Shown: positions 518 through 63,915 of the stretch, one piece after another
Layout of the letters: each line of letters begins with the position of its first letter
How positions within the stretch are numbered: the first letter of the stretch is position 1
Source of the DNA: Hydrolagus colliei
Lineage: Eukaryota
Direction: 5' to 3'
DNA length: 64,000 bases
Assembly (NCBI GenBank): GCA_035084275.1
Contig: CM068743.1
Span: forward strand, 116,498,001-116,562,000
The notes under the pieces: generated by a model
What the model was told of the DNA's origin: nothing
What the model saw: only the letters and a program-made list of their open reading frames with translations
Database searches by the model: none
Made by a program: the position numbers and the translations under genes

Positions 518-952
518 ATGTGGGGGGCAGGTTGTGTCTGTGTGCTCAGTGCCCTGGTGTCATGTAAGTTTATCTGGATGCAATTTAATGATTATCACAT
601 CATCAGAGACAGTAAACGAGGCTAATTATTTTATTTTGTGTTTCCAGTTGGCTGTGAGGGCTTTACCTTGTCACAGCCCATGTCCATGATCAAGGAGGAA
701 GGAAAAACAGCGAAGATTCCCTGTGAAATGGAAAATAAATCAATGGGCAATGACTATGTTCACTGGTACCGTGAGAATCCCGGGAAGGGGCTTCAATGGA
801 TGTTGTATTATCACTCAAAGGACAAGAAAGGTCACTCGCATGATTTCCCAAGCCGTTTTTCTGCTGAGAAACGTGGGGACCTGTGCACTCTCACAATCAC
901 AAGCCTCAACTCGGCTGACACTGGTACTTATTATTGTGGAGTCTGGGATTCC
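518..952 (+). CDS. TRGV: TCR gamma V segment V1 (leader 518-563, intron 564-647, V exon 648-952)
   Basis: Leader MWGAGCVCVLSALVS with GTAAGT donor and TTTCCAG acceptor. V exon has Cys23 (KIPC), HWYR, YYCGVWDS and is followed by a 23-RSS. Confidence 0.95.
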
Positions 953-991
953 CACAGCAGCTGCAGACACACTACAGATCGTACAATAACT
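953..991 (+). other. 23-RSS of V1
   Basis: CACAGCA + 23 nt + ACAATAACT. Confidence 0.9.
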
Positions 992-1809
992 TGCCTCTCA
1001 CTCGAAAGCCAACACGGCTGCAGTTGGGTGTCAGTGTAATGAGGGGGAAACTGTGAACTGTAGCAGAGAGACCCCAGCCTGGTCAATGCTGAAGGTTGTG
1101 GTCCAGATACTGGGGAAGAACTGTACATCATGTGTTTCTGTCACTGTAATAAGCGGGAGGGGAAGAATTGAAGGGGAACCTTATTTTAGTCACTCAGACA
1201 TTTTGCTCCAATGGGAGATTGTACATCAATCATATGCTGGGCTTGTAAACAAATAAAACCACACATTTGATGTGATGCGTGAACTTTGTAAAAATAATTG
1301 AATTGTAATAACTTAGAAATGGAAAGCGTAACAATTGAAGTGTAACGGTGAACATTTCAATCTGCATTGGGTGCCATATACTAATTGGAAAAGTAAACCC
1401 TAGAAAGTTCAGGTTTGCCTCTGTTCACCCCTTCCGAATTGCAATGAAAATGATAAAATACTAATTCTGCTTGATGATATATGATGGACTATGAAACATC
1501 TGTTTCACTTAAATTTGTCTAAATCTTCTATTTACGGGAACATGCCGCGTTTCTCCTGCCCCATAAATAAATAGACAGACAGATGAAGCAAGCAAGCAAA
1601 GAAGCAAGCAAGCAAATACAGTAGGACAAAAGCGTAAATGGGCGCAGCTGTTGTGCGGGCTGATGAGGTAGGCGGGGGGCGGGAGAAACACAACCTCACA
1701 ACAACGGTAGTTGGCAGAAAGGGGTTTCAATCATTCCCACAGAATAAAGAGCGAAGTGAACTCATCCGATCAGCTTCTCTCTGTTCCTTGTCCACACATC
1801 ACATTAGAT

Positions 1810-2280
1810 ATGTGGGGGGCAGGTTGTGTCTGTGTGCTGAGTGCCTTCATGTCACGTAAGTTTATCTGGACGCTTTGAAATGATAACAATAATTCTTGCA
1901 TTCGCTGTTCCTTGATAATGATTATCACATTATCAGAGAGTAAAACTTAATAAGGAATTGTTTTTGTCTTTCCAGTGGGCTGTGATGGTCTGTCCTTGAC
2001 TCAGCCCATATCCATGCTCAAGAAACCCAGCAGGACACTAGAGATGACCTGCTCAGTGGTGGGCGGATCAATGCAGAATTTGTATGTTCACTGGTACCGT
2101 GGGAATCCCGGGAAGGAGTTTCAATGGATTCTCTATTACCGCTCAGATACACTGAAGGAAACATCGCCTGCCTTTTCAGAGCGTTTCTCTGCTGTTAAAA
2201 GTGATCAGTCGTGTATTCTTACAATCATAAAACCCAACAAGGATGACAGTGCCACCTATTATTGTGGTGTCTGGGATTCA
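1810..2280 (+). CDS. TRGV: TCR gamma V segment V2 (leader 1810-1855, V exon 1976-2280)
   Basis: Leader MWGAGCVCVLSAFMS, GTAAG/TTTCCAG intron, open V exon LTQP...EMTC...HWYR...YYCGVWDS. Confidence 0.95.
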
Positions 2281-2319
2281 CACAGCACTCGCAGACACAC
2301 AACACATCGTACAATAACT
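2281..2319 (+). other. 23-RSS of V2
   Basis: CACAGCA + 23 nt + ACAATAACT. Confidence 0.9.
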
Positions 2320-3310
2320 TGCCTTTCAATAGAAGATCAATTCGGTTGCAGCTGAGTCTCAGTGTGTTCATTGAAGGGGAGATTGTTAACTGCAGCAGAC
2401 AGAAAACAATCATATCACATCGTCCACATATCACATCACAGAGCGTTTCTCGAAGCGTTTTTATCGCGAAGTTCATTGACTGTATTATGTTAATGAATAA
2501 GACACAGTATTTTAATTGCCATTGACATCCAATCATTCTATTGACTCTCATATATTTTGTCTAAAATTAAATCCACTAAAGTTCGCACTTACAGACCACA
2601 CTCTCCTGCTCATTACCTCCAAATGCACATTTTAATTATGTGACATACTGGATTACTTTACTGTGAAAGTAAATTGAAGATTGTGAAACGGATGTTTTCG
2701 CTAACAATTTTCTGGGTTGCCAACATTCTATACACAGCCATAGCCTCGTCATAAATCCATTGTATCATAAACCCAATATTTTGTAGTGAAGATTGAAATG
2801 TGGTTTAAAATCACATTTTTCTCATGACCATTTGCTTATTCGCCATCTCTGTCCTTATATCATTCCCAACAATAAAATTCCTTTTTACATGCCTCTGTCC
2901 TCTCCAGGCCTGGTTTCCCTAAGGTCCTCCTCACCAACCTCCCCATCCATACTCTACACAAACTCTAGATCACTAATAACACAGTCTTTGCCAAAATAAA
3001 CTCGGTGAGACCATCAATGCCAGACTCCCCGACACCCTGTTCCCCAATAAAGCCTCAAATATTGTGGGCCTTGAACCCACAACCTTCTGACACAGAACCT
3101 GCCGTTGCTGCCAAATGAGCCAATCTGATAGACAACGAAGAAATGGCCAGAGGTAACGCTCAGCTTGAAGAGGTGATGGGAGGAGGAGAAACACAACCGC
3201 AAACACTGCTTATTGGCACAAACAGGTTTAGATCATTCTCACTCAAGACGAACGCAGTGATCTGGTCAGATCCCCCTCAAGCTGTGCTGAGGGCTCACAT
3301 CACATCAGAT

Positions 3311-3742
3311 ATGTGGGGGGCAGGTTGTGTCTGTGTGCTCAGTGCCCTGGTGTCATGTAAGTTTATCTGGATGCAATTTAATGATTATCACATCATCAGA
3401 GACAGTAAACGAGGCTAATGATTTTATTTTGTGTTTCCAGTTGGCTGTGAGGGCTTTACCTTGTCACAGCCCATGTCCATGATCAAGAATAAAGGGAAAA
3501 CAGCGAAGATGCCCTGTGAAATGAAAGATAAATCAATGGGCAATGACTATGTTCACTGGTACCGTGAGAATCCCGGGAAGGGACTTCAATGGATTCTCTA
3601 CCACACAGCAGCTAAGACAGAAAACTCGCCTGATTTTCTACGACGTTTTTCTGCTGATAAAATTCGTGACTCGTGCACTCTCACAATCACAAAACCAGAA
3701 CCGAGCGACACTGGCACTTATTATTGTGGAGTCTGGGATTCC
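3311..3742 (+). CDS. TRGV: TCR gamma V segment V3 (leader 3311-3356, V exon 3441-3742)
   Basis: Leader identical to V1. Open V exon KMPC...HWYR...YYCGVWDS, 3 nt shorter than V1. Confidence 0.95.
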
Positions 3743-3781
3743 CACAGCAGCTGCAGGCACACAACAGATCGTACAATAACT
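3743..3781 (+). other. 23-RSS of V3
   Basis: CACAGCA + 23 nt + ACAATAACT. Confidence 0.9.
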
Positions 3782-4149
3782 TGCCTCTCACTCGCAAGCC
3801 AACGCGGTTACAGTCGGTGTATTGAGGGGGAAAATGTTAACTGCAGAGGAGAGAACCCAGCCTGGTCAATGCTGAAGGTTGTGGTCCAGATACTGGGGAA
3901 GAACTGTACAGAGGAATTTGCGTTCATTTTATTTACAGTGTGGAAGTGGTTACATAGGAATCTTATTTAAGTCTTTCTGACATTTTGCACCAGTGGCAGA
4001 TTGCGAATCAGTAATCACAAGGTGGGCATGTAAAGGAACAAATTGAATCACAAATGCATGAAAAACGTAATCGTTTCGCCAACACGATAATTCCAGGTTT
4101 GAAACGACACACTTACATTTCAGTTTGCTGCGTGTATTATTTCAAGATT

Positions 4150-5257: not shown

Positions 5258-5288
<31 letters not shown>

Positions 5289-18693: not shown

Positions 18694-19244
18694 TAGTAAT
18701 TGGCCTTACTAATAATAATTTTAGCATTTTGAAATAATGTCACAGCATATATCTTATGAAGTGTAGTGACTGTGCATTTTAGGTGAACCTAGCAGCCAAT
18801 ACGCCCAAAGCAACATCACACAAACCAACCATGAACTAATAGCAATAATAATAATACTTACATTTGATGGAGCACCTTATCATATATTCGAGACATCTCA
18901 AAGCATTTCACAGAATTTATTGTAAATTTACTGCAACATCCACTTGAACATACAGACAGGAACTTTTAAAGACCCATCTGAAAGACGACACTGAAAACAA
19001 TACAGAACATCACCAGCACGATGACTCAAAGTGTAGGGATTGAGCCCTTACCTTTGGCCTCAGAGACAAGAATGCTACTGTTAGTCTGTGTGGTTTATTT
19101 CAAAAGCGTTTACCTGCCCCACCACTACTAGAAGTATCATGTGGAGATAAGAAGACCTATCAATAAACATTTCCAAATTTAAGCTGTTTTTTTCCTTTGC
19201 TTTGAGTTGAGGGGTAATAATGAGCCAGTTCTGCTATAACAATA

Positions 19245-19700: not shown

Positions 19701-19758
19701 GACCAGTCATAGAAGGCTTTACACAGAGTTAGCTTGTGGTGAACAATAGACGCTGGAT

Positions 19759-20409: not shown

Positions 20410-20885
20410 ATGTGGCAGTATCTTATGTATATTCTAGTAACCCTTTTGCCAGGTAAATGTTTTCACACGCATTTAGCAATTTCCTCACACATTTGTATAA
20501 CGTCTTAAAAACACCTGGATAATTATCGTTCAAACATTGTAAAATCAAACAAATGAACCCTTTCAATTCTTTTGCAGGTGGATGTGAAGGCTTTTCGTTG
20601 ATACAGGGGGAGCTAACAATTTCCAAGCCATCAGGAAAGACCACCATATTCACATGTAAAATACAAGGTGGTTCAATGAGCAGCAGCATTATTCATTGGT
20701 ACCGTCAGCTGCCTGGAAAGGAGCTGCAATGGATGCTTTATTACAACTCACTGAGTCAAAAAGAATACGCCAAGGAGTTTCAGCAGAAATTCACTGCAAG
20801 GAAGAAAGATGACGCTTGCTTACTTTCAATAACAAACATACAGAAGGCTGATGCTGCCACATTTTACTGTGCTTCGTGGGATTAC
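20410..20885 (+). CDS. TRGV: TCR gamma V segment V4 (leader 20410-20452, V exon 20578-20885)
   Basis: Leader MWQYLMYILVTLLP, GTAAAT/TTTGCAG intron, IFTC...HWYRQ...FYCASWDY. Confidence 0.95.
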
Positions 20886-20924
20886 CACAGCCACTCAGAG
20901 CCATTGAAACCTCACACAAAAACC
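20886..20924 (+). other. 23-RSS of V4
   Basis: CACAGCC + 23 nt + ACAAAAACC. Confidence 0.92.
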
Positions 20925-22109: not shown

Positions 22110-22395
22110 TTAGTTCAGTGGTTAGAACACTCACCTTGCAAGTGAGAGACCCTGGTTCGATCCCAGGCAAAGCGAAACCTTGGGCAAGTTTCCTTACTCC
22201 ACACACTTGATAATAATCCCTTGGAAAAAGAAAACACTAATAAATTGGTTATTTCAATCCACTGTTTGTGGAATGCTGCTGTGTGCAATTGGCTGCTGCA
22301 TTTCGCCCACAAAAACAGTCAATTTACTTAACGGCATATTCTTTGAAGCACTTTGAGACATCCAGCAGATGTGAAAAGCGCTATTTCAAATCGCA
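22110..22395 (+). mobile_element. tRNA-headed SINE; a second partial copy follows to about 22720
   Basis: A and B boxes, core and tail as above. Confidence 0.8.
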
Positions 22396-26403: not shown

Positions 26404-26447
26404 ATTGGCTGATGCAGAATCACATCATTTCCTGCATGATGACATCA
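26404..26447 (+). promoter_or_regulatory. V5 promoter module: ATTGG, CATTTCCTG (Ets-like) and TGACATCA (CRE-like)
   Basis: 26404-26408, 26426-26434 and 26440-26447; homologous module at V10 (51042-51072). Confidence 0.6.
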
Positions 26448-26502: not shown

Positions 26503-26951
26503 ATGAATTTCTATTTTGCAGTAATTTGGATCACCTCTTTCCTATGTTAGTTTTGAAAGCTCTGTTTGATCATTTTCTTGTCTATCATTATCCTAGGTAT
26601 TTTGAAATGACAACTACTGTATTTGTATTCCCTTTCCAGATGAATGCAGTGCTGAAAAGTTGACTCAGCCTAAATTATCAATGACCAGAAACCAGGAAAA
26701 AACTGTATTGTTTGATTGTAAGGTAGAAGGGGTGCAATTTAGTACTGCTTATATTCATTGGTACCGACAGACTAAACATGAAGCACTGAAATGGATACTC
26801 TACATTCAGTCCAAATCGAATTCTATAAACGACGATGGTTTTGGTAGTCTATTTTCAGCAGAAAAAGTGGAAAAAGAGAATACATGCAAACTTGTTATAA
26901 GAGAAGTTAAGCAGAAGGACGCTGGCATCTATTATTGTGCTTACTGGGATT
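26503..26951 (+). CDS. TRGV: TCR gamma V segment V5 (leader 26503-26545, V exon 26640-26951)
   Basis: Leader MNFYFAVIWITSFL, GTTAGT/TTTCCAG intron, LFDC...HWYRQ...YYCAYWD. Confidence 0.95.
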
Positions 26952-26990
26952 CACAGTGCTAGAGCACCATGAAAAACCTTTACAAAAACA
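26952..26990 (+). other. 23-RSS of V5
   Basis: CACAGTG + 23 nt + ACAAAAACA. Confidence 0.95.
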
Positions 26991-30738: not shown

Positions 30739-31233
30739 ATGGAGCTGTACGGTGTTGTAGTTCTGGTGAGCTCCCTGCTGGGTGAGTCTTTTAAGCTCGA
30801 ATGCATTGCTCTCTTGTGTGTCGTTTGCTTCGTATAATAAAATATCATTCTAATAATGGTATAGTGTGTCGGGCTAAGGATTGTCATTATTATAATACCA
30901 CCATCTGTATTTTGTTGCAGCCGAATCTCTCGCTCAAAACCTGATTCAGCTTGAAGTCTCAGTCAGCAGAAAGCCAAGCAAAACTGCCCGCATTCATTGT
31001 AAATTGGAAGGTGCATCTTTCGACAATATTATCATTCACTGGTATCGACAAATCCCAACTCAGCCCATTGAGCGGATTCTGTATGTCCAGACTGCGGGCT
31101 CTGTGCAGAGGGATGCGGGTTTCACTACTAGATTCGCAGCCGAAAACCTAAAAGATGAGAGCATCAGCCGACTTGAAATATCACAAATCCAAAGCACCGA
31201 TGCCGGCTCCTATTACTGTGCCTATTGGGCATC
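30739..31233 (+). CDS. TRGV: TCR gamma V segment V6 (leader 30739-30781, V exon 30921-31233)
   Basis: Leader MELYGVVVLVSSLL, GTGAGT/TTGCAG intron, AESLAQNLIQ...RIHC...HWYRQ...YYCAYWA. Confidence 0.95.
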
Positions 31234-31272
31234 CACAGTGACACTGAGCAATAGAAAAGCTATACAAATACT
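31234..31272 (+). other. 23-RSS of V6
   Basis: CACAGTG + 23 nt + ACAAATACT. Confidence 0.92.
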
Positions 31273-34055: not shown

Positions 34056-34519
34056 GAAACATACTTAAACAAATATCATTAACATATATATATATACACA
34101 AAAAGAACAGCAAATGTTTAACATCTTTAGCCTGCTTTTACAGTAGGTTTAGTTGATTAGATTTAAAATATGCATAGTTACATAGAGTGATATAGCAGGG
34201 GAACAGCCCTACTTGTCCATATTTATACTTCACATCAGCCATTGGCCATCGAGACAATACACTAGAATATAAACTAGCCTCTATACAATCAACTTTTAAA
34301 TATTGCTTTCTACTACGTAAGCAATTTTAGAAAAAAACACTATTTTTAAACACCAATGAGATAGCAACTGAATATACAAGATACCAATAGGAGCTGTGAC
34401 CATCTGAAAACGGATTGGTTAGAATAATGAGCCACTTATTTTTCATTTCATAGAGATTTGACCAAATATATCTATTGCATCGTGCAATTCAGCAGCACAA
34501 TATGGACCACCGCCTTATA

Positions 34520-34950
34520 ATGTCACCATATTATTGGTTTATTATGGCATTATTTGCTCCTTGTAAGTGTTTCTGTTTATACAGTTAAACAGTCATCTGT
34601 TTAAAATGCTAATTGCAATCTAAAATTATATTCATTTCTTTGTGTTTTTTTCCAGATTGGAGTTGTGCTCAGACTTTGCTTCAGTCTCCGATTTCGGTTA
34701 CCAAATCTGTTGCTAAAACTGTCAGATTTCATTGCAAAATGGAGAATGGTCTTGTAAGCAATTATAACATCCACTGGTACCAACAGAAAGCAAATCAACC
34801 ACTCACCAGAAAAGTCTATTACAGCACTAGCAATCCTATATCTGATTCTAGGTTTAAGACAGAAATAAATAGAAACAATACTTGCCTTCTTATAATTGAC
34901 AATATTGTGCAGAGTGACACTGCTAACTATTACTGTGCCATTTATACAAC
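34520..34950 (+). CDS. TRGV: TCR gamma V segment V7 (leader 34520-34562, alternative in-frame ATG at 34502; V exon 34656-34950)
   Basis: Leader MSPYYWFIMALFAP, GTAAGT/TTCCAG intron, RFHC...HWYQQ...YYCAIYT. Confidence 0.9.
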
Positions 34951-34989
34951 CACAGACCTATATGGCATTGTAAACCCCCTACAAAAACT
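34951..34989 (+). other. 23-RSS of V7
   Basis: CACAGAC + 23 nt + ACAAAAACT. Confidence 0.88.
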
Positions 34990-39955: not shown

Positions 39956-39957
39956 GC

Positions 39958-42624: not shown

Positions 42625-43062
42625 ATGAAGCTGCATCACTGTTTTTTCGCACTGGTGCTTTTGCCCTGTACGTACTCACCTTTAACAAGTATATTTTGTG
42701 CATTTTCCATTTCTTTTATAGTCCATATTACATTGTTATTTATTTCTACTGTTTTTTCAGGTGGATGTCTTGCCATGAAATTAACACAGAATCCTATTTC
42801 ATACACCAAGCCTCCCGATAAAACAGTTAGAATTCACTGTAACAGGTTAGATGGCTTAATGACTGATCAGATTGTCCACTGGTACCAACATAAAAAGAAT
42901 CAGCCACTCACCAGGTTACTCTATTATCAAAATGGTAGAGTGCCAGATGCGGGAGTCGACAATCGGTTCAAAGTTGAAATGGCCCAAAACAGTTGCACTC
43001 TGATAATCGATGGGATTCAACTGGAGGACATTGCTACTTATTACTGTGCCGTTTGGGAAGAG
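42625..43062 (+). CDS. TRGV: TCR gamma V segment V8 (leader 42625-42667, V exon 42761-43062)
   Basis: Leader MKLHHCFFALVLLP, GTACGT/TTTCAG intron, RIHC...HWYQH...YYCAVWEE. Confidence 0.95.
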
Positions 43063-43101
43063 CACAGTACTAAATAGAGATACAACCCCTTTACAAAAAC
43101 C
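43063..43101 (+). other. 23-RSS of V8
   Basis: CACAGTA + 23 nt + ACAAAAACC. Confidence 0.93.
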
Positions 43102-46088: not shown

Positions 46089-47758
46089 TAGGTATCCCCC
46101 GATTTACAACAGAGTTGCGTTCCTGAAAAACGTCACGCAAATTGAAAGTTTGTAAATCAGTACGCAGTTTCCCATGCAGCCCTGAGATATAACCTGAGAT
46201 GCGTTATTTTGACAAAATGTTTGGACCTTAAACCCACTAAAATAAAACACAAAACACAAAACACACAAAATACCACTCAAAATAACACACATAGGCAAGA
46301 AGGGGTACTTGGGGTAATTGTACAGTACTGTACTTTAATACTGGCAAACTTTAATACAGTACAGTATTGGCAAACTTTAATACAGTGTGAGGGATGGGAA
46401 GTAGAAGCCTTCCCCTGTGAGTCTTTAATATAATCGCTTTCTTTCTCATGGGGCGGTGATTCCACTGTAGTACCACTTGGTCGGAAGAAAGAATCTAATG
46501 TCGATTGCCGGACTTGTTTCTTCTCTTTGTAGAGCTCCTTATAGCAGGTTAAGGCATCATTAACTATTCTCTTCACTCTCAGGCTGCGGTCACGGTTGGG
46601 GTCAATTTTAGTGAAGATTTCAAGCACGAAATCATGCTCAACACCACTGAAGGCTTCAGACAATTGCTCAGTAGTCAGCTGATGCTGGGTGGCTGGAGTT
46701 TCTACACACTCCTCATCCTCTCCTGCAGCTTCTTTGATCTTTGGCTGATTTAAAGCCTGACACACACTTCTCTTCCTTGGAAATAAAAGTTCTCGTGGGC
46801 ATACGCTTCCAGAAGAGGCCAGTCTCATCAACATTAAAGACCTGCTGAGGTGTGTACCCGCCTTCATCATTGATCTTCTTCAACTCAGCAGGATATTCTT
46901 GTGCAGCAACAGTGTCAGCACTTGCAGCTTCCCCACTCATCTTGATGTTGTGCAGCCCATGTCATCTTTTAAACCTTTCAGACCACCCTCTGCTAGCACT
47001 GAAAGATTGTGCCGTTGAGCCTTCTCCTTCCTGATCATTTAACTCCCTAAACAATGATTTTGCCTTCTTTTGGATAACCAGGGTGTTGAGCGCTATATTA
47101 CACTGGTTCTGATCCTCAATCCAGACACTCAGCATTCATTCCATGTTTTCCATCACATCACTCCTATGCTTTGATAATCTGGTTGCATCTGTAGGTGTAA
47201 AACACTTCAAACTTGCCAGTATTTTGTCCTTATTTTTCTGTATAATAGCCACCGTCGATCTAGCTCGCCCTAAAGCCCTCTCGATGTCCGTAACTTTTTT
47301 GCCAGACTCAATACGCTTTATCACCACCAATTTGGTATCTAAAGTGATGACCTTGCAGGGTCTTTTACCGCTAGCGGTAATACTGCTGCTCATTTCACTT
47401 ACTGGTCTCTTTCTGACATTGTTGAAATGCGGTAGAGGCTGTAAATCGCTCGAAATTGCTGGGGAATTTTCGGAAATACAGTAATACTGACCACACGTGC
47501 TGTCGCTTCAAAAGAAGGTGGCTTTTAAACAATGACGTACTGACATGCTATTGGTCAGTTCAACAGCTTGGATACAGTATACGTACTGCGTATTTACCGC
47601 GAAATACCATATACTGGGCATGCGCAAAAAAGAAGCGTAAAAGTTTTTGGGGTTTAAAACTAAACTACTTATTGTACATCGATAAAAAGGTGTTAACAAA
47701 TTATGTTCATTAAATCAAAATCATGTACATAGAGATGTTGTAAATTGGGGGATACCCG
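46089..47758 (-). mobile_element. Internally deleted Tigger/pogo (Tc1-mariner) DNA transposon
   Basis: TIRs GGTATCCCCC(G/A)ATTTACAACA at 46091-46111 and 47736-47756; TA target duplications; CENP-B-type HTH ORF 47136-47393; VFNVDETGLFWK; C-terminal QSTLDSFF. Confidence 0.9.
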
Positions 47759-47867: not shown

Positions 47868-48130
47868 TAATAATAATCCTTGCATTGGATATAGCACTTT
47901 TCACATTTTCAAGACATCTCAAGGTGCTTCATAGAATATACTGTAAAGTGAATTGACTGTATATGTGTGGGCGAAATGCGGTAGCCAATTGCGCACAGCA
48001 GTGTCCCACAAACAGTCATGGATTGAAATAATCAATCTATTATTGTTTTATTTTTTGAGGGATTATTATTAAGAGTGTGGAGTAAGGAAACTTGCCCAAG
48101 GTTTTATCCTGTCTGGAATCGAACACAGGT
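47868..48130 (-). mobile_element. tRNA-headed SINE with its head split by L2
   Basis: Core and tail; head remnant at 48500-48537. Confidence 0.75.
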
Positions 48131-48134
48131 CATG

Positions 48135-48500: not shown

Positions 48501-49382
48501 GCGGCAAGTGCTCTAATGACTGAGCTACGGACTCCAGAACTTTAAAATCAGAAGTAACACAATTAAAACAGAAACCTTTTTTTCTTTCAAGAGATTTGTG
48601 AAGATGTGGAATCTATACCAGACACAGGGCGATGAGTTTCCACATGTGTCAGACAATCCAGCTGAGCAGAAAATAAATTTAACAGCTAAGAGTCAGATAA
48701 ATGTTGCAATATATATTCTTTATACCAGCAAGGAGATTATAGCGGCTGTATTAACTCAATAGCTTTTCATTATTATTAAACCACAGGGTTCTTGGTACTG
48801 GCATGTTTGCCCTTTTGGGGTCAGTCTGACATATATGGAAACCCGTCACCATGTTTAAGAGTAACCGGACCAAAGTGAGAGTTCCATGCCTCTCACCTGG
48901 GCATGAAAATTTCAGAGACAAGATTGTTGAAATGGATTGCGCGCTCTCTCCCTGGAGGGGCAGATCCTGCTGAGTTAAATCCAGAGAGTATTAGGAGCAG
49001 ATTGCCGAGAGCCGAGACTTGGGAGTATAACCAGTCATACCCCAGGACTAACTCTGGGGTCCCCAGGTTTACGTTCGTCATTCGGACAACAGGCCGGTTG
49101 TTCGAGTAGCGAGGACTTGACCCACTCAAATACATCAAATCAATATGAAGCCTTGATTTAGAGATAAGTGGACCTTATTATACACCTTGCAAAGAAAACT
49201 GCGAGCAATCAATTGAAGAGGGCAACCTCCCCCACCATTATACAGAGGCGGGGCATGTGACAGTCTTAATAATGATTGGGTACAAATCTGCGAGTCATTT
49301 CCTTTCCAGTCGATGAAGATCTGGCCCATATCTGATCCGATGCATCAACCAGTTAATCCAAGGCAGGACCTGCAGCCACACA

Positions 49383-49802
49383 ATGTCTCCACTTTACTGT
49401 CTGTTTGGGACGGCAGTTTTGCTCTGTAAGTGTGTCAAAGGTTTTTTTTATTCGCCGAATGTTTGGTCGTCTCTTCACGGTGGGAATCACTCCCGTTTGC
49501 TCTGTTTCTAGGTGGGAGTTTTGCTCAGGAAGTCGAACAGTATCCGTTATCGTTGACCAAACCTAAGATGAGAACGGTCAGAATGAAATGCGACATCAAG
49601 GGCTCACAGACTGTTCACTGGTACCAGTCTAAACCCGGCTCCCCGCTAACAAGGATTCTATATCAAGTTGACTCCAAATCACACCCAGACCCTGGCACCC
49701 CAAACAGGTTCTCAACGGAGACCAAGCCCAACCAGTTCATCCTCGTTGTTAACAACGTCGTTGAGGAGGATTCTGCCACTTATTACTGCGCTTACTGGGT
49801 GC
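49383..49802 (+). CDS. TRGV: TCR gamma V segment V9 (leader 49383-49425, V exon 49512-49802)
   Basis: Leader MSPLYCLFGTAVLL, GTAAGT/TTTCTAG intron, RMKC...HWYQS...YYCAYWV. Confidence 0.95.
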
Positions 49803-49841
49803 CACAGTGCCCAGCGGCCACACACACGCTTAACAAAAACC
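49803..49841 (+). other. 23-RSS of V9 (perfect consensus)
   Basis: CACAGTG + 23 nt + ACAAAAACC. Confidence 0.96.
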
Positions 49842-51140
49842 CCCGACACACAGGCACAGCTCTCCTCGTTCACTCGATCAGACCCAATGCTCGCTCTCCA
49901 CGCCCCCAATTCTACATTTTCATAATTGGAACATACGCTGTTATTGTGGTTAAATAGCTTGTAGTTTAAATTCTATCAACATAACACAGAGCGTATCAGG
50001 GTATTGAGGGATATTATACAATGCAGGCAAATAACAACATTACATTTGTATAGTGTCTGTCACATCCCAAGTAAGGTTTTTTTTAAGTGTTATTTACATC
50101 ATATCTGTGATTTTATTTTCCATTCCAGTAGCTGTTCTGTTAAAGTTCAGCTTTATTGCACCAATAGCAACGAAATGTCGTTACCTAACATGTCCTTTAA
50201 AAACAAATACAGGATTTGTGCCTGGACTTGTGTTTTTAATAGTTTAAAATGTGTACTAATAAAGTTATCCCAATTGTGCTAATGATAACCTCAGGTTGGT
50301 CACTGTAAACCATGGGAAAGTCCATACTCAGACAATTGTGCATTTTAAACACATAAACCTTTGCATAAACCTCTTAGTAAATGCACCTGGATATTTGTGA
50401 TTGTTTTCCAACACATTATACATTGCCTTTTAAATTTAGCAATGATCACTTTAAAATAGGACTGGCACTGTAATGTACACTCTGCACTCTCATTGCTTAT
50501 TTTGCAAATACATACAATATAAATGTTTTAAGTTGCCAACAATGCAATACAATTTACATTATTGGGCAAGTTCCACACGCCTAATAATAATCCCTCTAAA
50601 ATACAATAAGAAAATTGGTCATTTCAATCCACGACTGTTTGTGGGACACTGCTGTGCACAATTGGCTGCCAAGTTTTGCCCAATTTTTTTTCCAATCAAT
50701 TCACTTTACAGTGTATTCTGTGAAGTGCTTTGAGATGTTTAGAAAACATGAAAAGCGCTATATCAAATTCAAGGATTATTATATTATTATTATAAACTGT
50801 TGTGCCTTTCTCCAAGCACTTGACACTGCTGACTGGGCATCTGAGATGGGCTTTACAGCCAAAAGAGTTGGATAGGGAAAAGATGATTGAAAGCACAGTC
50901 AAAAAGATATGACATCAACCAACAGCTACCCCCAGCTCTTTAACACTCCTCAAGCTCCACTAAATTTCCACATCTGATTACATTGAACTCTCATGTCCAG
51001 CTAAAGTGAACTGCACTCATTAAGCCATATGTAGATTTAACATTGGCTGAAACAGATCCACATCATTTCCTGTTTGATTATATTTCATTAGCTCAGGAAC
51101 AGTTCAAAGCTGAATCAATTCAGTGTTCCACACTAGAAAC

Positions 51141-51582
51141 ATGAAGATCTATTTTGCTGTCATTTTGATCGGCTCTTTTTTATGTTAGTGTTTTAGGATC
51201 ACTTTTCTCCTGTTAATCATTTTATATTATTATTATATTGAATGTTAAAATAATATTACATTTATCTTTCTTTCAGCTGGATTGATTGCCTTGACTCAGC
51301 CTCAATTATCATTGATCAGTAAAGCCAAGAAAGCTGTGCAGATTTCCTGTATTATTGCTGGCGAAACTTTCAAGAATGATTTTGTTCACTGGTATCGTCA
51401 ATCTCCAGGTAAAGAGCTCCAGTGGATACTGTATTTTCAATCTCAACAAAAGAGGGAGATCGATTCTGCCTTTCAAGCCAGATTCCTTGCCGAAAAAGTT
51501 GAAGAAACCAAAACCTGCAAACTTATAATAACAGAAACTACCAATGCTGATACTGGGGTCTATTACTGTGCCGTATGGTCTT
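51141..51582 (+). CDS. TRGV: TCR gamma V segment V10 (leader 51141-51183, V exon 51277-51582)
   Basis: Leader MKIYFAVILIGSFL, GTTAGT/TTTCAG intron, QISC...HWYRQ...YYCAVWS. Confidence 0.95.
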
Positions 51583-51621
51583 CACAATGACAAAAATCTA
51601 CAGGAAACCCATACAAAAACC
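51583..51621 (+). other. 23-RSS of V10
   Basis: CACAATG + 23 nt + ACAAAAACC. Confidence 0.93.
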
Positions 51622-53460: not shown

Positions 53461-53770
53461 GAGTCCTGTAGCTCAGTGGTTAGAGCACTCACTTTACAAG
53501 CGAGAGACCTGGGTTCGTTTCCAGGCAGGTCAGGGCGAAACCTTGGGCAAGTTTCCTTACTCCACATGCCTGATAATAAACCTTCAAGAAAAAAACACAA
53601 TTAGAAATTGGTCATTTCAATCCACAACTATTTGTGGGACCCTGCTGTGCGCAATTGGCTGCCGTATTTCACCCAAAATATACAGTCAATTCACTTTACA
53701 GTACATTCTGTGAAGCGCTTTGAGACATCTAGAAGATGTGAAAAGCGCTATACCAAGTGCAAGGAATATT
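53461..53770 (+). mobile_element. tRNA-headed SINE, full length
   Basis: GAGTCCTGTAGCTCAGTGGTTAGAGC...GGTTCGTTTCC, core, stem-loop tail. Confidence 0.85.
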
Positions 53771-55702: not shown

Positions 55703-57009
55703 TAACAGAATCAATGACAAAATTACATTTGTATAGCGCCTTTATATGTTTTTCTTCTAGGTATGTATACTAGCCGTATGCAGTACTCTTCCTTCATCTT
55801 GTTCCCCATTTTGCTTAAACTCTTTCATATGTACTTCAGATATTTCTTCTGTGTTTATTATTTGTACCACTTTCTGGAACTCAAATCTTCCTGTTTCAGA
55901 AATTTGCCCCTTATTCTGTTACAGTATCTTCAATCTCTATCACAATTTGCTCTTTTATCATCTTGTCCCTCAGAGCTCCATAGTTGCATGTTTTGCTGCG
56001 TGACCTTAATGGCACAAAATATTGGGCATACAGTTCAGCAGGCCGTAGTTTTGTTGTGCCAAACTTAAACTGTCAGTGGTCCATTTATGCCTCAGGTTGA
56101 TAGTTAACTTCAATGGCCTTGGCCTTGTATTCTATTGTTCCAGTCTGCATCTTGTTTCCTTAATTCTGCGTCTAATTCATTCCAAAGTCAGTCCACTTCT
56201 GACACCATGTAATAAAACTCTATCCAAATTAAAGGTGTGTTCGTAACTTTGCACTTTGTCCCACTCCTAGAGTCCTTTCATCCTTTCTGCACTTCTTATT
56301 GATCTTTCATTAATTGTGCATTTACTCTTAAAGGAGTATCTAGCGAATATGACTGAGGAGAGTGAATGTCAAAAGAACACTAAAACCAGACATTAAACCT
56401 TGATGTCCTGCCTGTTAAAGTTGCCTGCCAGGTGGTTGTTAAATACCCCCATAGCACCTTGCACAAAGAGAAGGGGGGTTTATCGGGTGTTCCAGCCAAC
56501 AATCCCCAAGTAAAATTGATCACTCACTTCATGGCTATTTGTGGGACATTGCTGTGCTCAAATTTGGCTGCCTGGTTTCCTTACAGCCAAATCACTATAC
56601 AGTATATCCTGCTAAGTCCTTTGAGATGTCTCATTGATGTGATAAGCTGCTACATGAAATCCAATGATTATTTTTATTAATAATAATAATTTACAATATA
56701 TATTTGGATTCAAACCCCAATTTTTTAATATATAGTTTACACAGTAACATTCTCCAAGTATAAATGAAGTGTCAAACTTTGAGATGGGTGGAGGGAGAGC
56801 ATGGACCAGCCCCTTCCAAAAATCAACCACTCCTCTCCCATCAGAAATATCTTCCCAATTTTGGACGTTTGTGTGGTTACAATTGCTGTAAAGCTTGCGA
56901 TAGGAACAAAAAGATTTGGAGTAGATCATTGTGATATTGTGATGGGGTAAGTCTATTGACAAGTTTAAAGGTAGAAGCTAGAGTTATTGTAAAGTGATGT
57001 GATACTGTG

Positions 57010-57067
57010 GTAACCTCTGGTGCATATACAAAAATATTCGGCCAAGGAACTAAACTTATTGTTACAG
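57010..57067 (+). CDS. TRGJ: TCR gamma J segment J1 (VTSGAYTKIFGQGTKLIVT)
   Basis: 12-RSS AGTTATTGT(56982-56990)-12 nt-TACTGTG(57003-57009); FGxGT motif; GTAAGC donor. Confidence 0.93.
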
Positions 57068-57346
57068 GTAAGCTATTCTGTTTAAGAGACTATGTTCATG
57101 TGTTTACATATAAGTGTAGTGTGTTTAACAACATATAGCTAGAGACATCCCAGTTCATGAATGTAAGGTATAACATTGTCTTTCGCATTGGTATGGGCTG
57201 GATTCCCAATCAATTAAATATTTGGATGAGTATTTGAGAAAAAAAATTAAAAAATTAAAAATATTAAGGGATATTGGGAAAGACAACAACAAAATTACTC
57301 TTGTATAGCGTCTTTCAAGTTAGGAGGACTTCCCAAGGCGCTGAGT

Positions 57347-57639
57347 ACTAATCCTTGCATTTGATATAGCGCTTTTCGTGTCTTCTAGATGTCTCAAAGT
57401 GCTCCACAGAATATACTGTAAAGTGAATTGACTGTATATATGTGAGCAAAACGCGGCAGCCAATTGGGCACAGCAGTGTCCCACTAACAGTCTTGGATTG
57501 AAATGAACAATTTTTTTGAGGAATTTTTATTAGACGTGTGGAGTAAGGAAACTTGCCCAAGGTTTTGCTCTGTCTGGAATAGAACCCAGGTCTCTCGCTT
57601 GAAAGGCGAGTGCTCTAACCACTGAGCTTCAGGACTCCA
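57347..57639 (-). mobile_element. tRNA-headed SINE, full length, between J1 and J2
   Basis: Reverse complement of the 53461-53770 family. Confidence 0.85.
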
Positions 57640-57932
57640 GAGCTGGAAAGTGGGATTAAAAATAAGGTTGATAATACAGGTAGATATGAACACCGGTTTC
57701 TATTGCGTTACCTTTGATATTTGAGTGGTTAAAAAAAAATGCAAATTCTGGTATTAAACTCAGTGCTACAGGGGAGTTTGCAAACATCTTCCCATGTAAA
57801 TGATAATGTTTCAGTTCAGGCGATTGCCAACTGCCAATTGTTGGAGTTTGCCCCTCCAAGCCCCCGGTAAACTGATGTGTTAGTTGTATCGCTAGATTGC
57901 GGTTAGTTCTTGTGAGGCGATAGAACACTGTG

Positions 57933-57989
57933 ATACTTCGGGTGCATGGATCAAGCACTTTGGCAATGGAACTAAACTCATTGTAACAG
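57933..57989 (+). CDS. TRGJ: TCR gamma J segment J2 (TSGAWIKHFGNGTKLIVT)
   Basis: 12-RSS AGTTCTTGT(57905-57913)-12-CACTGTG(57926-57932); GTAAGG donor. Confidence 0.95.
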
Positions 57990-58371
57990 GTAAGGCTGTG
58001 GCTATGGAACAGCTTTCCCGTTAATCGCGGATTTCCGTGAGCTTGTATTTCAATGGTTATTCAGCATTTGGAGGCATCACATTGATACTTTCCATGCGTT
58101 TCACTTTCATGTGAATATCTCAAACGGCTTCACAGAATTAATTGCCTGGGTCCCGAGCTGCGGTTGGGGGGTGGTGGGGGGAGTGAGATGATTAAGGTGG
58201 GAATAGCTACAGAACGGGAATGTCACAGAGTTGTCCTGCTTTGTTAATGTAAAGCCCCGAGTCTCCAGGTTAAATGCACGGGACACTGGAAGTAAACCCG
58301 GTGTTGGTGGTAAGAGCCGGGTTAGGATTGGCGCTCACCCCGCATTTATTGTAGAGCATTGTATCGCTGTG

Positions 58372-58418
58372 GTCTTCTGGTCAGGTGTTCGGCGGAGGAA
58401 CCAAACTGTTAGTTACAG
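58372..58418 (+). CDS. TRGJ: TCR gamma J segment J3 (SSGQVFGGGTKLLVT)
   Basis: 12-RSS ATTTATTGT(58344-58352)-12-CGCTGTG(58365-58371); GTAAGC donor. Confidence 0.92.
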
Positions 58419-58617
58419 GTAAGCTTCTATCCAGTTCACTTCACTCTGATACTGGCCCACCATTCGGTTGGTTCAGTATTGCGATATTGGTGGATATCTA
58501 TGGTAACAGTGACACTGAGGGTTGGAGAGCAGAGGCATCGGGGCAGTGACAAGAACATGTTAGCGATGCCTATGAAAGACAGGTGGTGAGGTTTTAGCCC
58601 GATACTGTAACACTGTG

Positions 58618-58681
58618 CTAAACCAATATGGATGGCTTGATAAGCAAATATTCGGCACTGGAACTAAACTCGTCGTAACAG
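58618..58681 (+). CDS. TRGJ: TCR gamma J segment J4 (LNQYGWLDKQIFGTGTKLVVT)
   Basis: 12-RSS GGTTTTAGC(58590-58598)-12-CACTGTG(58611-58617); GTAAGA donor. Confidence 0.93.
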
Positions 58682-58871
58682 GTAAGAGTATTAATGAATG
58701 TTAATGATATCATTGTTAATGTTGGGGGGGGAAGTTATGAGAAGCAATGAGAGGTGAAGAGGCCACAGCAGCCGTTAGTGCTTTGCACGTCTTGTGGCGT
58801 TAGAGACCGTTGAAAGATCCGGAGAGAATCGTGTGTTTCCTTTAGTTATTGTGCTGCCTTCTAACACCGTG

Positions 58872-58927
58872 TTCAGCTGGTGGCTCAAGGCTGGTATTCG
58901 GCACTGGAACTAAACTCCTGGTTACCG
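58872..58927 (+). CDS. TRGJ: TCR gamma J segment J5 (SAGGSRLVFGTGTKLLVT)
   Basis: 12-RSS AGTTATTGT(58844-58852)-12-CACCGTG(58865-58871); GTAAGT donor. Confidence 0.95.
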
Positions 58928-58984
58928 GTAAGTGCAAGGTGCGAGGATCTGTACTGTTTGTATCCGAGGGAATCGATGGAGGAG

Positions 58985-59080
58985 TTACTAGCGATGGTCA
59001 GGTGTTTGGTGCAGGAAAAATATTAAGAGACTATAGAGTCACAGACTGTAGAGTTAAGAGACTCTATAGAGTTACAGGCC
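58985..59080 (+). pseudogene. J-like relic (GQVFGAG...RVTG) expanded by internal duplication
   Basis: GGTCAGGTGTTTGGTGCAGGA resembles J3 GGTCAGGTGTTCGGCGGAGGA. No valid heptamer and no donor. Confidence 0.5.
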
Positions 59081-59134
59081 GATCTCTCCAGCTCCAGTAA
59101 CTCTATAGTTATTGTACTGCACTTTAACACTGTG

Positions 59135-59179
59135 CAGGTTACAAGGTATTCGGCTCTGGAACTAAGCTCGTTGTTACAG
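59135..59179 (+). CDS. TRGJ: TCR gamma J segment J6 (GYKVFGSGTKLVVT)
   Basis: 12-RSS AGTTATTGT(59107-59115)-12-CACTGTG(59128-59134); GTAAAT donor. Confidence 0.95.
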
Positions 59180-59329
59180 GTAAATACTGTCTGTATGTTG
59201 CGTAAAAGGTGCTCCGGTTCAGAGTCACAGTCCTTAATATCATAATCTTCATTAACCCTGCGAGGCGCCGTGCGTGAGATATTGACTATTATTCTAATGA
59301 CCGGAGTAAAGTTGGGAGTCGGAAAAACA

Positions 59330-59450
59330 ACAACAATAATAATAATAATCCTTGCATTTGATATAGCGCCTTTCACGTCTTCTAGACGCCTCAAAGCGCT
59401 TCACGGAATATACTGTAAAGTGAATTGACTGTGTATTTGTGGGCGAAATT
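59330..59450 (-). mobile_element. SINE 3' fragment between J6 and the pseudo-J
   Basis: AATCCTTGCATTTGATATAGCGCC...AAGCGCTTCACGGAA tail. Confidence 0.75.
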
Positions 59451-59622
59451 CCTGTTACGAAAAAGATTGTGTTAGTTGCCTTTGTGCAAATATCCTCGGT
59501 AATTCTTTGGAGAGAGTGAGGCTGTGTTGGTCCTTGTGCGGTATTTGGTGTGGAAAATGTTTTAACAAAATAGATGAAAAGCCATAGGAGGAGACTGCAG
59601 GTCTGTAGCTGCTGTGCTGTAG

Positions 59623-59691
59623 CACTGTGATGTACCCAGCTCCGACCCGAAGATACTTAGCGCTAAATAGGAGCTAAACTCCCTGTTACTG
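59623..59691 (+). pseudogene. Pseudo-J relic between J6 and J7
   Basis: Perfect CACTGTG at 59623-59629 but degenerate nonamer. The AAGATA...GGAGCTAAACTCCCTGTTACTG stretch aligns to J 3' ends, with a TAG stop, no FGxG and a lost donor. Confidence 0.6.
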
Positions 59692-59869
59692 TTGGGGTTT
59701 CTGTCCAGTAACGCAGTGATCTGAGAAATCGCCAGTGTTTGTTATCATTGGGATCAGGTCTATAGTGTGTGAGGATTGTGTGCTCGCTCAGGGCACGGGT
59801 GGCTCCCAGCTCCGCCACTCGCCAGCCTGGCTTGTTTGCTGAGTTATTGTACTGACCGGTATCGCTGTG

Positions 59870-59916
59870 GTCAACAACTAAAGTCTTCGGCACCGGGACA
59901 AGGCTGGTTGTAACAG
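59870..59916 (+). CDS. TRGJ: TCR gamma J segment J7 (STTKVFGTGTRLVVT)
   Basis: 12-RSS AGTTATTGT(59842-59850)-12-CGCTGTG(59863-59869); GTACAT donor. Confidence 0.92.
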
Positions 59917-60195
59917 GTACATCTCCTGCCGAGCTGCTTGACATTAGTGTGGGTGCGGGGGGTGCGGGGGGGGGGGGGGGGGGGGGGGAGAGTTTTGCGG
60001 TAAATTACGAGCGTTGTACGGGACTGTGTACATTACGGTATATTCCACAATCAAACGCGAGGCTTATGAGTAAGGGTTACTGCCCCTCATTTTGCAACGG
60101 CAAATGGAAGTTGAACTTGGAAAGCGAAGTGTTGAGTGAAGCCGCGGGGAGGTCGGGCTGTGGCGCGGGTTCTTGTGAGGCGCCTTAACACCGTG

Positions 60196-60246
60196 CAGCT
60201 TCCTATATAAAGATCTTCGGCGCCGGGACCCGGCTGATAGTTACTG
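60196..60246 (+). CDS. TRGJ: TCR gamma J segment J8 (ASYIKIFGAGTRLIVT)
   Basis: 12-RSS GGTTCTTGT(60168-60176)-12-CACCGTG(60189-60195); GTGAGT donor. Confidence 0.95.
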
Positions 60247-61098: not shown

Positions 61099-61434
61099 CC
61101 GAATTACCGAAGAAACCCACGCTACGCATTTTCAGCAAGTCTGTAATCGGCAAGATTCAGGTCGTTTGCTTGATAACTGATTTTTTCCCTGATGTTATCA
61201 GAGTTTACTGGAAAATTGGCGACGAAACTTACAATGAAACTGACACAAACAAGATATTTGAAGCGGATCACATTCAGACGGAGAAGTCGCGGGTCCCTTA
61301 TGTGATCAGCCGTCTTTCGGTTACCAAAGCCGACTGGAAATCAAAAACAATCATTTGCGGGGTAAAGCACGAATCAGTCACCGCCGGTCATTATGAAATC
61401 ACCGCCAATAAAAAAACTGCTACAAGTCCTGACG
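61099..61434 (+). CDS. TRGC: TCR gamma constant region exon 1 (C1-set Ig domain)
   Basis: Polypyrimidine acceptor TTTTTTAG, phase 1 matching the J donors. Reads AELPKKPT...VVCLITDFFPDVIRVYW...TIICGVKHES...SPD with both Cys, the Trp and an NET sequon. The GTACTG donor is weak, so the 3' end is less certain. Confidence 0.93.
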
Positions 61435-62360: not shown

Positions 62361-62417
62361 GAAAAAGAAACACAACTGATCCAATCACTGGACATTGTAC
62401 TGAGCCCGAGGACCAAG
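62361..62417 (+). CDS. TRGC: TCR gamma constant region exon 2 (connecting peptide with interchain Cys)
   Basis: AAACAG acceptor and GTAATG donor, 57 nt, phase 1/1, reading GKRNTTDPITGHCTEPEDQ with one Cys and an NTT sequon. Confidence 0.8.
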
Positions 62418-62789
62418 GTAATGCTTTTCCCCATAACTCCCCTCTAAATATACAGTCATTATACTTGACAACAATGATCTATGAAACACTTTGGCAGATT
62501 TTGATGTTACATTAAATGAGTGATTTACTTAAAATTCGTGCCCTATGTGTGGCTCCCTATCACGCAGTAATCTCTCTCCCCCCATCACCCCAGCCTAGCC
62601 AGGCTTCATTGGCTCCCTATCACACATTCAACTCTTCCCCCCTCCCGTCACCCCTACCATTGCCAGCCTCTCTATCACACACTAAACTCTATTTGAAGCT
62701 CCCTAACCATAAGTTTATTTATTTTTGGAGGGTGATTACCCCAGAAAGTGATTAATAAGTGGGTTCCTGCTTAATGCTGATCAACAAAG

Positions 62790-62946
62790 GAGTGTGTGTG
62801 TGTGTGACTGTATGTATCTGTGTGTTAGTGTGTACTTGTGTGTGACTATGTGTGTCTGTGGCTGTGTTTGTCTGTGTGTTTGTGCCTCTGTGTGTAAGTG
62901 TGTGTGTCTGTGTGCATGGGGTATGTGGTGTTTGTGTGTGTGTGTG
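62790..62946. repeat. Imperfect (TG)n microsatellite
   Basis: Direct reading. Confidence 0.9.
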
Positions 62947-63218
62947 TTTAGAGCACCTGGCTCACAAGCGAGAGACCTGGGTTCAATTCCAAGCAGGGGA
63001 ATTGGCAACCTTTGGCAAGTTTCCTTATTCCACATGGCTGATAATAATCCTTCAAGAAGAATAAACAATAATTTGGTCGAGCAATCCATGACTGTATCAA
63101 ACGGCGCTGCTTTGCGCCCACAAATATACAGTCAATTCACTTTATAGTATATTCTGTGGAGCGCTTTGAGATGTCTAGAAGACATGAAAAGCGCTACATC
63201 AAATGCAAGAATTATTAT
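62947..63218 (+). mobile_element. tRNA-headed SINE in C intron 2, preceded by a (TG)n tract
   Basis: GGTTCAATTCC box B, core and tail. Confidence 0.8.
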
Positions 63219-63269
63219 CGAGGGCCAAGAAAAAGATGAAGGTTTTATAACCATTTGGTTTCTACTAGT

Positions 63270-63665
63270 TCCCCAACACAGAACAGATCGACTTCAAAAA
63301 TCCTTGTAGTCGTGTTCAAACTACTTCACTCTCTGAGATCTTCCTATCTCTGCAACCTCCTCACTCCACAATCCACCACCCAGCGCCTCCGCTTGACTGG
63401 CATCGTCCTCCGGCTCATCTTTTGCACTTCCAGCCACTATGCTCTGAAACTCTTGAACACTCTTCCTCAATCCATCCACCTTGCACCCTCTCTCTCCTTT
63501 TTTAACGGTCCCATCAGTCATCCCAAATCCCCTCCTTTCCCTCCACCCTCCCTGATACCAACCCCAGCTCGGGTCTGAAACATTGACTGTCCAACACCTT
63601 GGAATGTCCTCTCTACAGGAAAGGAGCTATACATATGTAATTTTGTTGTTGTTGTTGTTGTTGTA
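63270..63665 (+). mobile_element. L2 3' fragment in C intron 2
   Basis: KILVVVFKLLHSL; (TTG)n tail. Confidence 0.72.
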
Positions 63666-63781
63666 GATTGTCACTATCTCCAACTTGTAACTTTGTTGAA
63701 ACATTTCTCCACAAATTATTTTTGAATTCTTTAATCTTTGTTAAAGTGCAATTGGTAGAGACTTCTTTTTTGTTTCATCAG

Positions 63782-63915
63782 AGTCATCTGTAAACTCATT
63801 CCGACTGACCATCTTCACTTATACCTTACTGGTGGTGAAAAGTGTCGTGTACAGTGGCATCGTTGGCCTCATCCTTTACAGAATGGAGTACCACCAACAG
63901 AAAAATCCACTTTAA
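63782..63915 (+). CDS. TRGC: TCR gamma constant region exon 3 (TM and cytoplasmic tail)
   Basis: TTTTTTGTTTCATCAG acceptor, reading ESSVNSFRLTIFTYTLLVVKSVVYSGIVGLILYRMEYHQQKNPL*. The TM Lys lies in the Y-x-L-L-x-x-K-S-V-V-Y motif typical of TCR gamma/beta. Too short to appear in the supplied ORF track. Confidence 0.92.

Follow-up and report, generated by a model that had tools for sequence, protein, structure and literature searches.

The window analysed here is the whole 64,000-nucleotide (nt) stretch from 116,498,001 to 116,562,000 of contig CM068743.1 (Hydrolagus colliei, assembly GCA_035084275.1). It is free of N and carries, all on the forward (+) strand and in this order, ten variable (V) genes, eight joining (J) segments and one constant (C) gene of three exons. 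We regard it with high confidence as an intact germline T cell receptor (TCR) gamma (TRG) locus. The gamma identity is well supported, though without statistical proof, and the architecture is that of a textbook TRG translocon, V(n)-J(8)-C(1), which changes no concept. Each element listed in a preliminary description of this DNA (10 V, 8 J and the C exons) was recovered in its place.

A scan for the pattern W-[YF]-[RQK]…[YF][YF]C in open frames, covering all frames of both strands, yields exactly ten V-like exons on the + strand and zero on the − strand. Together with their leader exons and recombination signal sequences with a 23-nt spacer (23-RSS), the V genes are as follows:

TRGV 1, 518..991, + strand: leader part 1 at 518-563, V-exon 648-952, 23-RSS 953-991 (CACAGCA/23/ACAATAACT)
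TRGV 2, 1810..2319, + strand: leader part 1 at 1810-1855, V-exon 1976-2280, 23-RSS 2281-2319 (CACAGCA/23/ACAATAACT)
TRGV 3, 3311..3781, + strand: leader part 1 at 3311-3356, V-exon 3441-3742, 23-RSS 3743-3781
TRGV 4, 20410..20924, + strand: leader part 1 at 20410-20452, V-exon 20578-20885, 23-RSS 20886-20924
TRGV 5, 26503..26990, + strand: leader part 1 at 26503-26545, V-exon 26640-26951, 23-RSS 26952-26990
TRGV 6, 30739..31272, + strand: leader part 1 at 30739-30781, V-exon 30921-31233, 23-RSS 31234-31272
TRGV 7, 34502..34989, + strand: leader part 1 at 34502-34562, V-exon 34656-34950, 23-RSS 34951-34989
TRGV 8, 42625..43101, + strand: leader part 1 at 42625-42667, V-exon 42761-43062, 23-RSS 43063-43101
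TRGV 9, 49383..49841, + strand: leader part 1 at 49383-49425, V-exon 49512-49802, 23-RSS 49803-49841, perfect consensus
TRGV 10, 51141..51621, + strand: leader part 1 at 51141-51183, V-exon 51277-51582, 23-RSS 51583-51621

Every leader exon (43-61 nt) starts with ATG and ends in phase 1 at a GT donor. The introns (84-139 nt) end in AG, and each V-exon (291-313 nt) directly abuts a CAC-heptamer, a 23-nt spacer and an A-rich nonamer. Residues C23, W41, L89, D98 and C104 are invariant in the protein alignment of the ten V genes, and V10 matches the Pfam V-set family with an E value of 8e-12. Judged from these sequence features, all ten V genes are apparently functional. The RSS given earlier for V2 is present, but the better reading of its heptamer is CACAGCA at 2281 and not the overlapping CACACAG at 2279. 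When the ten V proteins and the C protein were compared with the window by tblastn, only the ten V exons and the three C exons rose above noise, indicating that no V or C pseudogene remnants are present and bearing out the earlier remark that no V pseudogene is visible. With a subgroup threshold of 75% nt identity between V-exons, V1 and V3 (86%) form the sole pair above the limit, while V2 shares 70-71% with these two and every other pair shares 50-62%; the ten V genes thus fall into nine subgroups.

Two further observations concern the V genes. A module of ATTGG (an inverted CCAAT box), 12-22 nt and TCATT(T/C)(C/T) lies about 70-105 bp 5' of the leader ATG of V1, V3, V5, V6, V9 and V10 (414-446, 3212-3239, 26404-26431, 30649-30675, 49275-49301 and 51042-51069, respectively), with looser forms 5' of V2, V4, V7 and V8. 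It occurs seven times in the window against 1.25 expected, six of the seven copies being upstream of a V, and is likely to act as the core of the V promoter. Furthermore, an extra cysteine in framework region 3 (FR3), two residues before L89 (…C-x-L-x-I…; in V1 at about 868-870), is present in eight of the ten V genes and absent from V6 and V9. It is also found in a V of Callorhinchus milii and in a white-shark chain, and seven of the eight V genes that carry it have a cysteine in leader part 2, near the predicted N-terminus, as well. More speculatively, the conservation of this FR3 cysteine may hint at a lineage-specific structural feature.

The J segments occupy the interval 56982-60246. Each consists of a nonamer, a 12-nt spacer and a heptamer (12-RSS), followed by an open frame with the motif FGxGT(K/R)LxVT and, after one extra G (phase 1), a GT donor:

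TRGJ 1, 56982..57067, + strand: 12-RSS 56982-57009, coding 57010-57067 (VTSGAYTKIFGQGTKLIVT), donor GTAAGC
TRGJ 2, 57905..57989, + strand: 12-RSS 57905-57932, coding 57933-57989 (TSGAWIKHFGNGTKLIVT)
TRGJ 3, 58344..58418, + strand: 12-RSS 58344-58371 (the weakest, 12/16), coding 58372-58418 (SSGQVFGGGTKLLVT)
TRGJ 4, 58590..58681, + strand: 12-RSS 58590-58617, coding 58618-58681 (LNQYGWLDKQIFGTGTKLVVT)
TRGJ 5, 58844..58927, + strand: 12-RSS 58844-58871, coding 58872-58927 (SAGGSRLVFGTGTKLLVT)
TRGJ 6, 59107..59179, + strand: 12-RSS 59107-59134, coding 59135-59179 (GYKVFGSGTKLVVT)
TRGJ 7, 59842..59916, + strand: 12-RSS 59842-59869, coding 59870-59916 (STTKVFGTGTRLVVT)
TRGJ 8, 60168..60246, + strand: 12-RSS 60168-60195, coding 60196-60246 (ASYIKIFGAGTRLIVT)

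The cluster spans 3.3 kb and holds two insertions of a short interspersed nuclear element (SINE), at 57346-57622 and 59342-59448. The motif FGAGKIL at 59005 is a candidate for a further, ninth J, but was not counted because RSS, TKL and donor are all missing. It belongs to a J-like relic at about 58985-59030 (…DGQVFGAGKIL…), between J5 and J6, whose DNA is akin to the core of J3; this may be a decayed ninth J, or chance.

Matches to the RSS consensus are concentrated at the gene segments. With up to three mismatches allowed, the 23-RSS consensus has 8 matches in the window against 1.08 expected, 7 of them at V ends, and the 12-RSS consensus has 10 against 1.14 expected, 7 of them at J starts. 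The 23-RSSs of V1-V3 carry 4/16 mismatches; they are the weakest among the V genes and are missed by this filter. Their non-consensus nonamer ACAATAACT (983-991, 2311-2319 and 3773-3781), which reads AGTTATTGT on the J side, is also that of the 12-RSSs of J1, J5, J6 and J7.

The C gene follows the J cluster:

TRGC exon 1, 61099..61434, + strand: immunoglobulin (Ig) C1-set domain (Pfam PF07654, E 6.6e-10), phase 1 at both ends
TRGC exon 2, 62361..62417, + strand: connecting/hinge exon of 19 codons with a single hinge cysteine (…ITGHCTEPEDQ)
TRGC exon 3, 63782..63915, + strand: membrane-proximal part, transmembrane (TM) segment FTYTLLVVKSVVYSGIVGLILY with a lysine, cytoplasmic tail of 11 residues, TAA stop at 63913-63915

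With AG at every acceptor, GT at both donors and phase-1 junctions, the exons encode 175 amino acids (aa) in total; the 3' untranslated region extends past the window end. A single-sequence AlphaFold2 model of exon 1 reached a mean pLDDT (predicted local distance difference test) of 47.9, too low for use. The TM sequence is YTLLVVKSVVYSGIVG. It has a single lysine, which the nearest arginine precedes by 12 residues, at the membrane boundary, so that the R-x4-K pair present in the TM segments of verified human TRAC and TRDC is lacking. The division into an Ig domain, a hinge cysteine and a TM lysine over three exons is the plan of TRGC1.

This anatomy has to be weighed against other antigen receptor loci. 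The preliminary description took V 23-RSS with J 12-RSS and no diversity (D) segments as defining TRG. This goes too far, since TRA and Ig lambda show the same arrangement, and the 23/12 orientation of the V and J signals occurs in TRB as well. It is the C gene, with its relatives, that carries the gamma call. The same description had named D segments as the kind of finding that would speak against gamma; a double-RSS search of both strands found no D-like element flanked by two RSSs in the window, the sole matches being artefacts of V5's own RSS. That a TRB or a TRA/TRD-type locus lies here instead appears very improbable to us. The signal orientation would suit TRB and TRA, and a TM lysine with a tyrosine four residues on is a TRB feature too. 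Yet the lack of a D-like element argues against TRB and TRD, eight J segments are far below the number in TRA loci, the missing Arg-x4-Lys pair separates the C gene from TRAC and TRDC, and its three-exon TRGC plan speaks against all three. An Ig light-chain locus (lambda/sigma-like), with which the lambda orientation of the signals would agree, is less probable still. The C region of a light chain is encoded by one exon and lacks a TM segment, whereas separate hinge and TM/cytoplasmic exons, the latter with a charged lysine, belong to the C gene in the window. Moreover, light-chain genes of cartilaginous fishes are arranged in small V-J-C clusters and not in a translocon of 10 V, 8 J and 1 C.

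The relatives of the encoded protein point to gamma. When a conceptual V10-J8-C chain was searched, the best full-length matches were chondrichthyan V-J-C-TM chains, with C. milii first (52-54% identity overall), followed by elasmobranchs (35-38%) and then by mammalian gamma chains. The attribution of the DNA to a cartilaginous fish is thereby borne out, the best matches in C. milii placing it among the holocephalans. Nurse-shark primers for TcR gamma-V1 encode the peptides MSLYYWL and TATYYCA (PMC5931798). A bamboo shark (orectolobiform) homologue, P0004, starts with MSLYYWL and contains TATYYCA, which links these proteins as a group with a gamma chain named on experimental grounds; finding this published gamma-V1 leader in shark relatives counts against TRB, TRA and TRD. 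The elasmobranch homologues (P0004-P0009) bear the NCBI automatic names 'immunoglobulin lambda-1 light chain-like' or 'kappa light chain-like', names that suggest a light-chain locus. All of these lambda/kappa-like proteins, however, share the TM segment FTYTLLLxKSVVYCGII and the tail YxxEYRDxKKPL. As TM and tail are of gamma type, the light-chain names must be wrong, and the naming looks like a systematic mis-annotation of shark TCR gamma chains.

The same direction is given by the structures in the PDB. The best chains aligning in a single stretch over V and C are TCR gamma (7l15_B with 100.9 bits, 7k0x_D and 6mwr_C), and full-length human gamma chains from cryo-electron microscopy complexes align across residues 2-279. 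Gamma chains are thus among the PDB top 60, in which no alpha, beta or delta chains occur, a further point against TRB, TRA and TRD. With the connecting peptide and TM segment as query against 177,635 PDB sequences, TM fragments of human TRGC1 were the sole match, a weak one. Other searches were less telling. PDB searches with the C1 domain alone and with a profile of four chondrichthyan C sequences do not discriminate, both being dominated by multi-domain Ig heavy chains. A homology search with the C region only (175 aa) gave 15 candidates, none significant, and is uninformative under its word-index and length limits. Labelling the matches from a representative library by their TM motif was rejected, since the top-scoring long multi-domain matches are gene models resembling membrane Ig heavy chains.

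The preliminary description had proposed C-region phylogeny as a check, and its outcome is mixed. The trees use human TRGC1, TRBC1, TRAC and TRDC references that are each 100% identical to PDB chains; a set of 18 sequences was enlarged to 40 with unlabelled single-chain relatives from a search of 1.84 billion representative proteins. In the maximum likelihood (ML) tree of 40 C regions, the window sequence pairs with C. milii (support 99/94) inside a chondrichthyan clade (98/96), which is sister to a bony-vertebrate clade containing the PDB-verified human TRGC1 (96/89). Human TRBC1, TRAC, TRDC, IGLC and IGKC are placed outside this TRGC grouping, a position that disfavours the other TCR loci and the light chains alike. 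The phylogenetic placement of the C region thus favours gamma without deciding for it.

Several results weigh against the gamma assignment. Where the chondrichthyan clade joins bona fide TRGC, the node is supported by only 85/40, and approximately unbiased (AU) tests reject neither a grouping of that clade with TRB (p 0.31), nor one with TRA/TRD (p 0.15), nor one with Ig light chains (p 0.41). The 18-sequence tree with human outgroups is a polytomy at its deep nodes, and AU tests on it are non-significant for every grouping, TRG monophyly included. In both trees the TRA, TRB and TRD references are human sequences. The match of the TM segment to TRGC1 has an E value of about 1.4, owing to the shortness of the segment, and the C1 domain alone scores equally well or better against Ig C domains (light-chain and heavy-chain, CL/CH) than against human TRGC1. 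Finally, the K-S-x-x-Y motif of the TM segment is shared by two unlabelled proteins whose position in the tree is close to TRBC1, and it is not strictly gamma-specific. Set against these points, the sum of the tree, the three-exon plan, the lone TM lysine without R-x4-K, the lack of D, the PDB ranking and the link to the literature makes gamma by far the most probable identity.

The nearest relative of the window chain is a TCR gamma chain of C. milii (P0001; UniRef A0A4W3JBI4 and A0A4W3JU11). Its V shares 72% aa identity with V10 and has an almost identical leader, its J (DTSGAWIKYFGTGTKLIVT) nearly equals J2, and TM segment and tail are conserved between the two (FTYTLLxxKSVVYxGIVG…YRMEY). 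The C regions share 44% identity, which probably reflects a separate chimaera species and less likely a paralogous locus. No exact match to the segments of the window was found in the protein collection (ten open reading frames (ORFs) looked up).

How much of the locus the window captures is a question of its edges. Positions 1-1257 repeat 2800-4042 with 89% identity, and as this alignment opens at the first base of the window, the tandem duplication giving V1 and V3 continues past the left edge. As this duplication bears V genes, ten V genes are a lower bound, and the V array probably continues upstream of the window. The right end lies 85 nt past the C stop codon, and a poly(A) signal is absent from those 85 nt. 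No flanking genes lie within the window, which starts in the V array and ends just past the C stop. The locus had been called complete. Its elements are intact, but completeness itself is not demonstrable given the left-edge duplication, the 85-nt right margin and the lack of flanking genes. V1-V3 are packed in 3.3 kb, which is unusually tight, and the remaining V genes are spaced by 1.3-16.6 kb with copies of long (LINE) and short interspersed nuclear elements between them.

The locus might look intact and nevertheless be unused as described, either because it is a silent duplicate of a different TRG locus of this genome or because the duplication around V1-V3 is partly an assembly artefact. 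We consider this very unlikely. It would be in keeping with the 86% identity of V1 and V3 within a 1.25-kb duplication of 89% identity, with the RSSs of V1-V3 being the weakest, and with the 44% identity to the one known C. milii chain, for which paralogy instead of species divergence is possible in principle. However, open frames, splice sites and RSSs are kept in all 10 V genes, 8 J segments and 3 C exons, which is unlikely without selection, and the two copies, at 89% identity, have diverged further than an erroneous collapse or duplication in the assembly would explain.

An intact TRG locus would be expected to work along the lines of established V(D)J biology, from which the following steps are drawn. 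The gene anatomy, intact frames, RSS arrangement, lack of D and TRG homology are features of the DNA itself, and from them rearrangement, expression, pairing and any somatic hypermutation would be predicted. In developing gamma-delta T cells, RAG1/2 would bring together the 23-RSS of one V and the 12-RSS of one J and delete the DNA between them; as all segments have one orientation, any V-to-J 12/23 joining would have this deletional outcome. The V-J junction would acquire P/N diversity. Transcription would be driven by the V promoter, and phase-1 splicing from the leader over V-J to C1, C2 and C3 would give a membrane protein of type I, about 300 aa long, whose hinge cysteine would then form the bond with TCR delta and whose TM lysine would dock to acidic residues of CD3.

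Comparison with known TRG loci puts the segment numbers into perspective. The single published TRG map in cartilaginous fishes is that of the sandbar shark (Carcharhinus plumbeus) according to a 2020 review. PMC7349638, summarising Chen et al. 2009, gives 5 V, 3 J and 1 C for it, which agrees with the numbers in the preliminary description. Both cartilaginous fish loci are a single translocon of V genes, a J cluster and one C gene without D, but the window contains at least 10 V (nine subgroups) and 8 J next to its 1 C. The possible germline V-J combinations accordingly number at least 80, against 15 in the sandbar shark. The window is holocephalan, whereas the sandbar shark is an elasmobranch, and the C region in the window shares 36-40% identity with elasmobranch C regions. 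Nurse-shark cDNAs imply at least nine V genes (PMC5931798).

The locus had also been called unusually J-rich, which is correct relative to the sandbar shark and does not hold beyond it. There are 7 V and 7 J in the TRG locus of zebrafish (PMC10322711), and 9 J are reported for alligator and 7 for opossum (marsupials) (PMC7349638). In architecture and J numbers the window thus resembles bony-vertebrate TRG loci with one J-C cluster (zebrafish 7V/7J/1C, duck 13V/5J/1C, alligator with 9 J, opossum with 7 J). Bony-vertebrate TRGC genes share the three-exon plan with the window C gene, which has the TM Lys-Ser-x-x-Tyr of human TRGC1 at about 30% overall identity to the latter. In mammalian TRG loci, duplicated J-C cassettes are common.

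The spaces between the gene segments hold several mobile elements. A nearly full-length LINE of the non-LTR (non-long terminal repeat) type lies between V7 and V8 at 36650-40200 on the − strand, and a SINE family of about 300 bp combines a tRNA-like head with a conserved core. A pogo/Tigger-type DNA transposon remnant occupies 46277-47393 (−). Their main features are:

36709-38727, − strand: LINE ORF of 672 aa with RVT_1 domain, 79% and 74% identical to C. milii proteins and at most 55% identical elsewhere, all in teleosts
39230-40105, − strand: LINE ORF of 291 aa with Exo_endo_phos endonuclease domain
62940-63240, 53462-53770, 35141-35395 and 22118-22391: SINE copies
57346-57622 and 47870-48131, − strand: SINE copies
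47136-47393, − strand: transposon ORF of 85 aa with CENP-B N-terminal DNA-binding domain (E 2.4e-7)
46277-46870, − strand: ORF of 197 aa adjacent to the transposon ORF, no Pfam match

At least 12 more fragments of the same LINE family are found in the window with 66-94% identity, the youngest at 17478-18697 and 43890-44462. Copies within the window reach 92-94% nt identity, which suggests that the family is young in this genome; no C. milii protein approaches this value. Together with the V10 and C comparisons, the LINE identities indicate a holocephalan source, probably other than C. milii. The SINE is represented by about 15 further, shorter fragments, and ARAGORN reports a tRNA-Val-like sequence at 53462-53533 in one of the copies.

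In summary, we have annotated a TRG locus of the ordinary immune-locus kind, which introduces no new type of system and is of modest general interest. Automatic pipelines mislabel such genes, as the shark homologues named Ig light chain-like illustrate, and short J and TM exons are easily overlooked. The locus provides a germline reference for scoring somatic hypermutation or repertoire data in the source species. A literature search, which excluded the elephant-shark genome supplement, found no paper describing a holocephalan TRG locus. We tentatively raise the possibility, and hold it with more doubt than confidence, that this is the first fully resolved holocephalan TRG translocon and the richest TRG described for any cartilaginous fish. 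No living animals with RAG-based antigen receptors are more basal than the cartilaginous fishes, and the chimaera locus would add a second, deeply diverged point (holocephalan versus elasmobranch) from which the evolution of V and J numbers, of RSS variants and of the TRGC exon plan can be followed. If its TRG is indeed the richest among cartilaginous fishes, this would point to a reliance of chimaeras on a germline-diverse gamma-delta repertoire.

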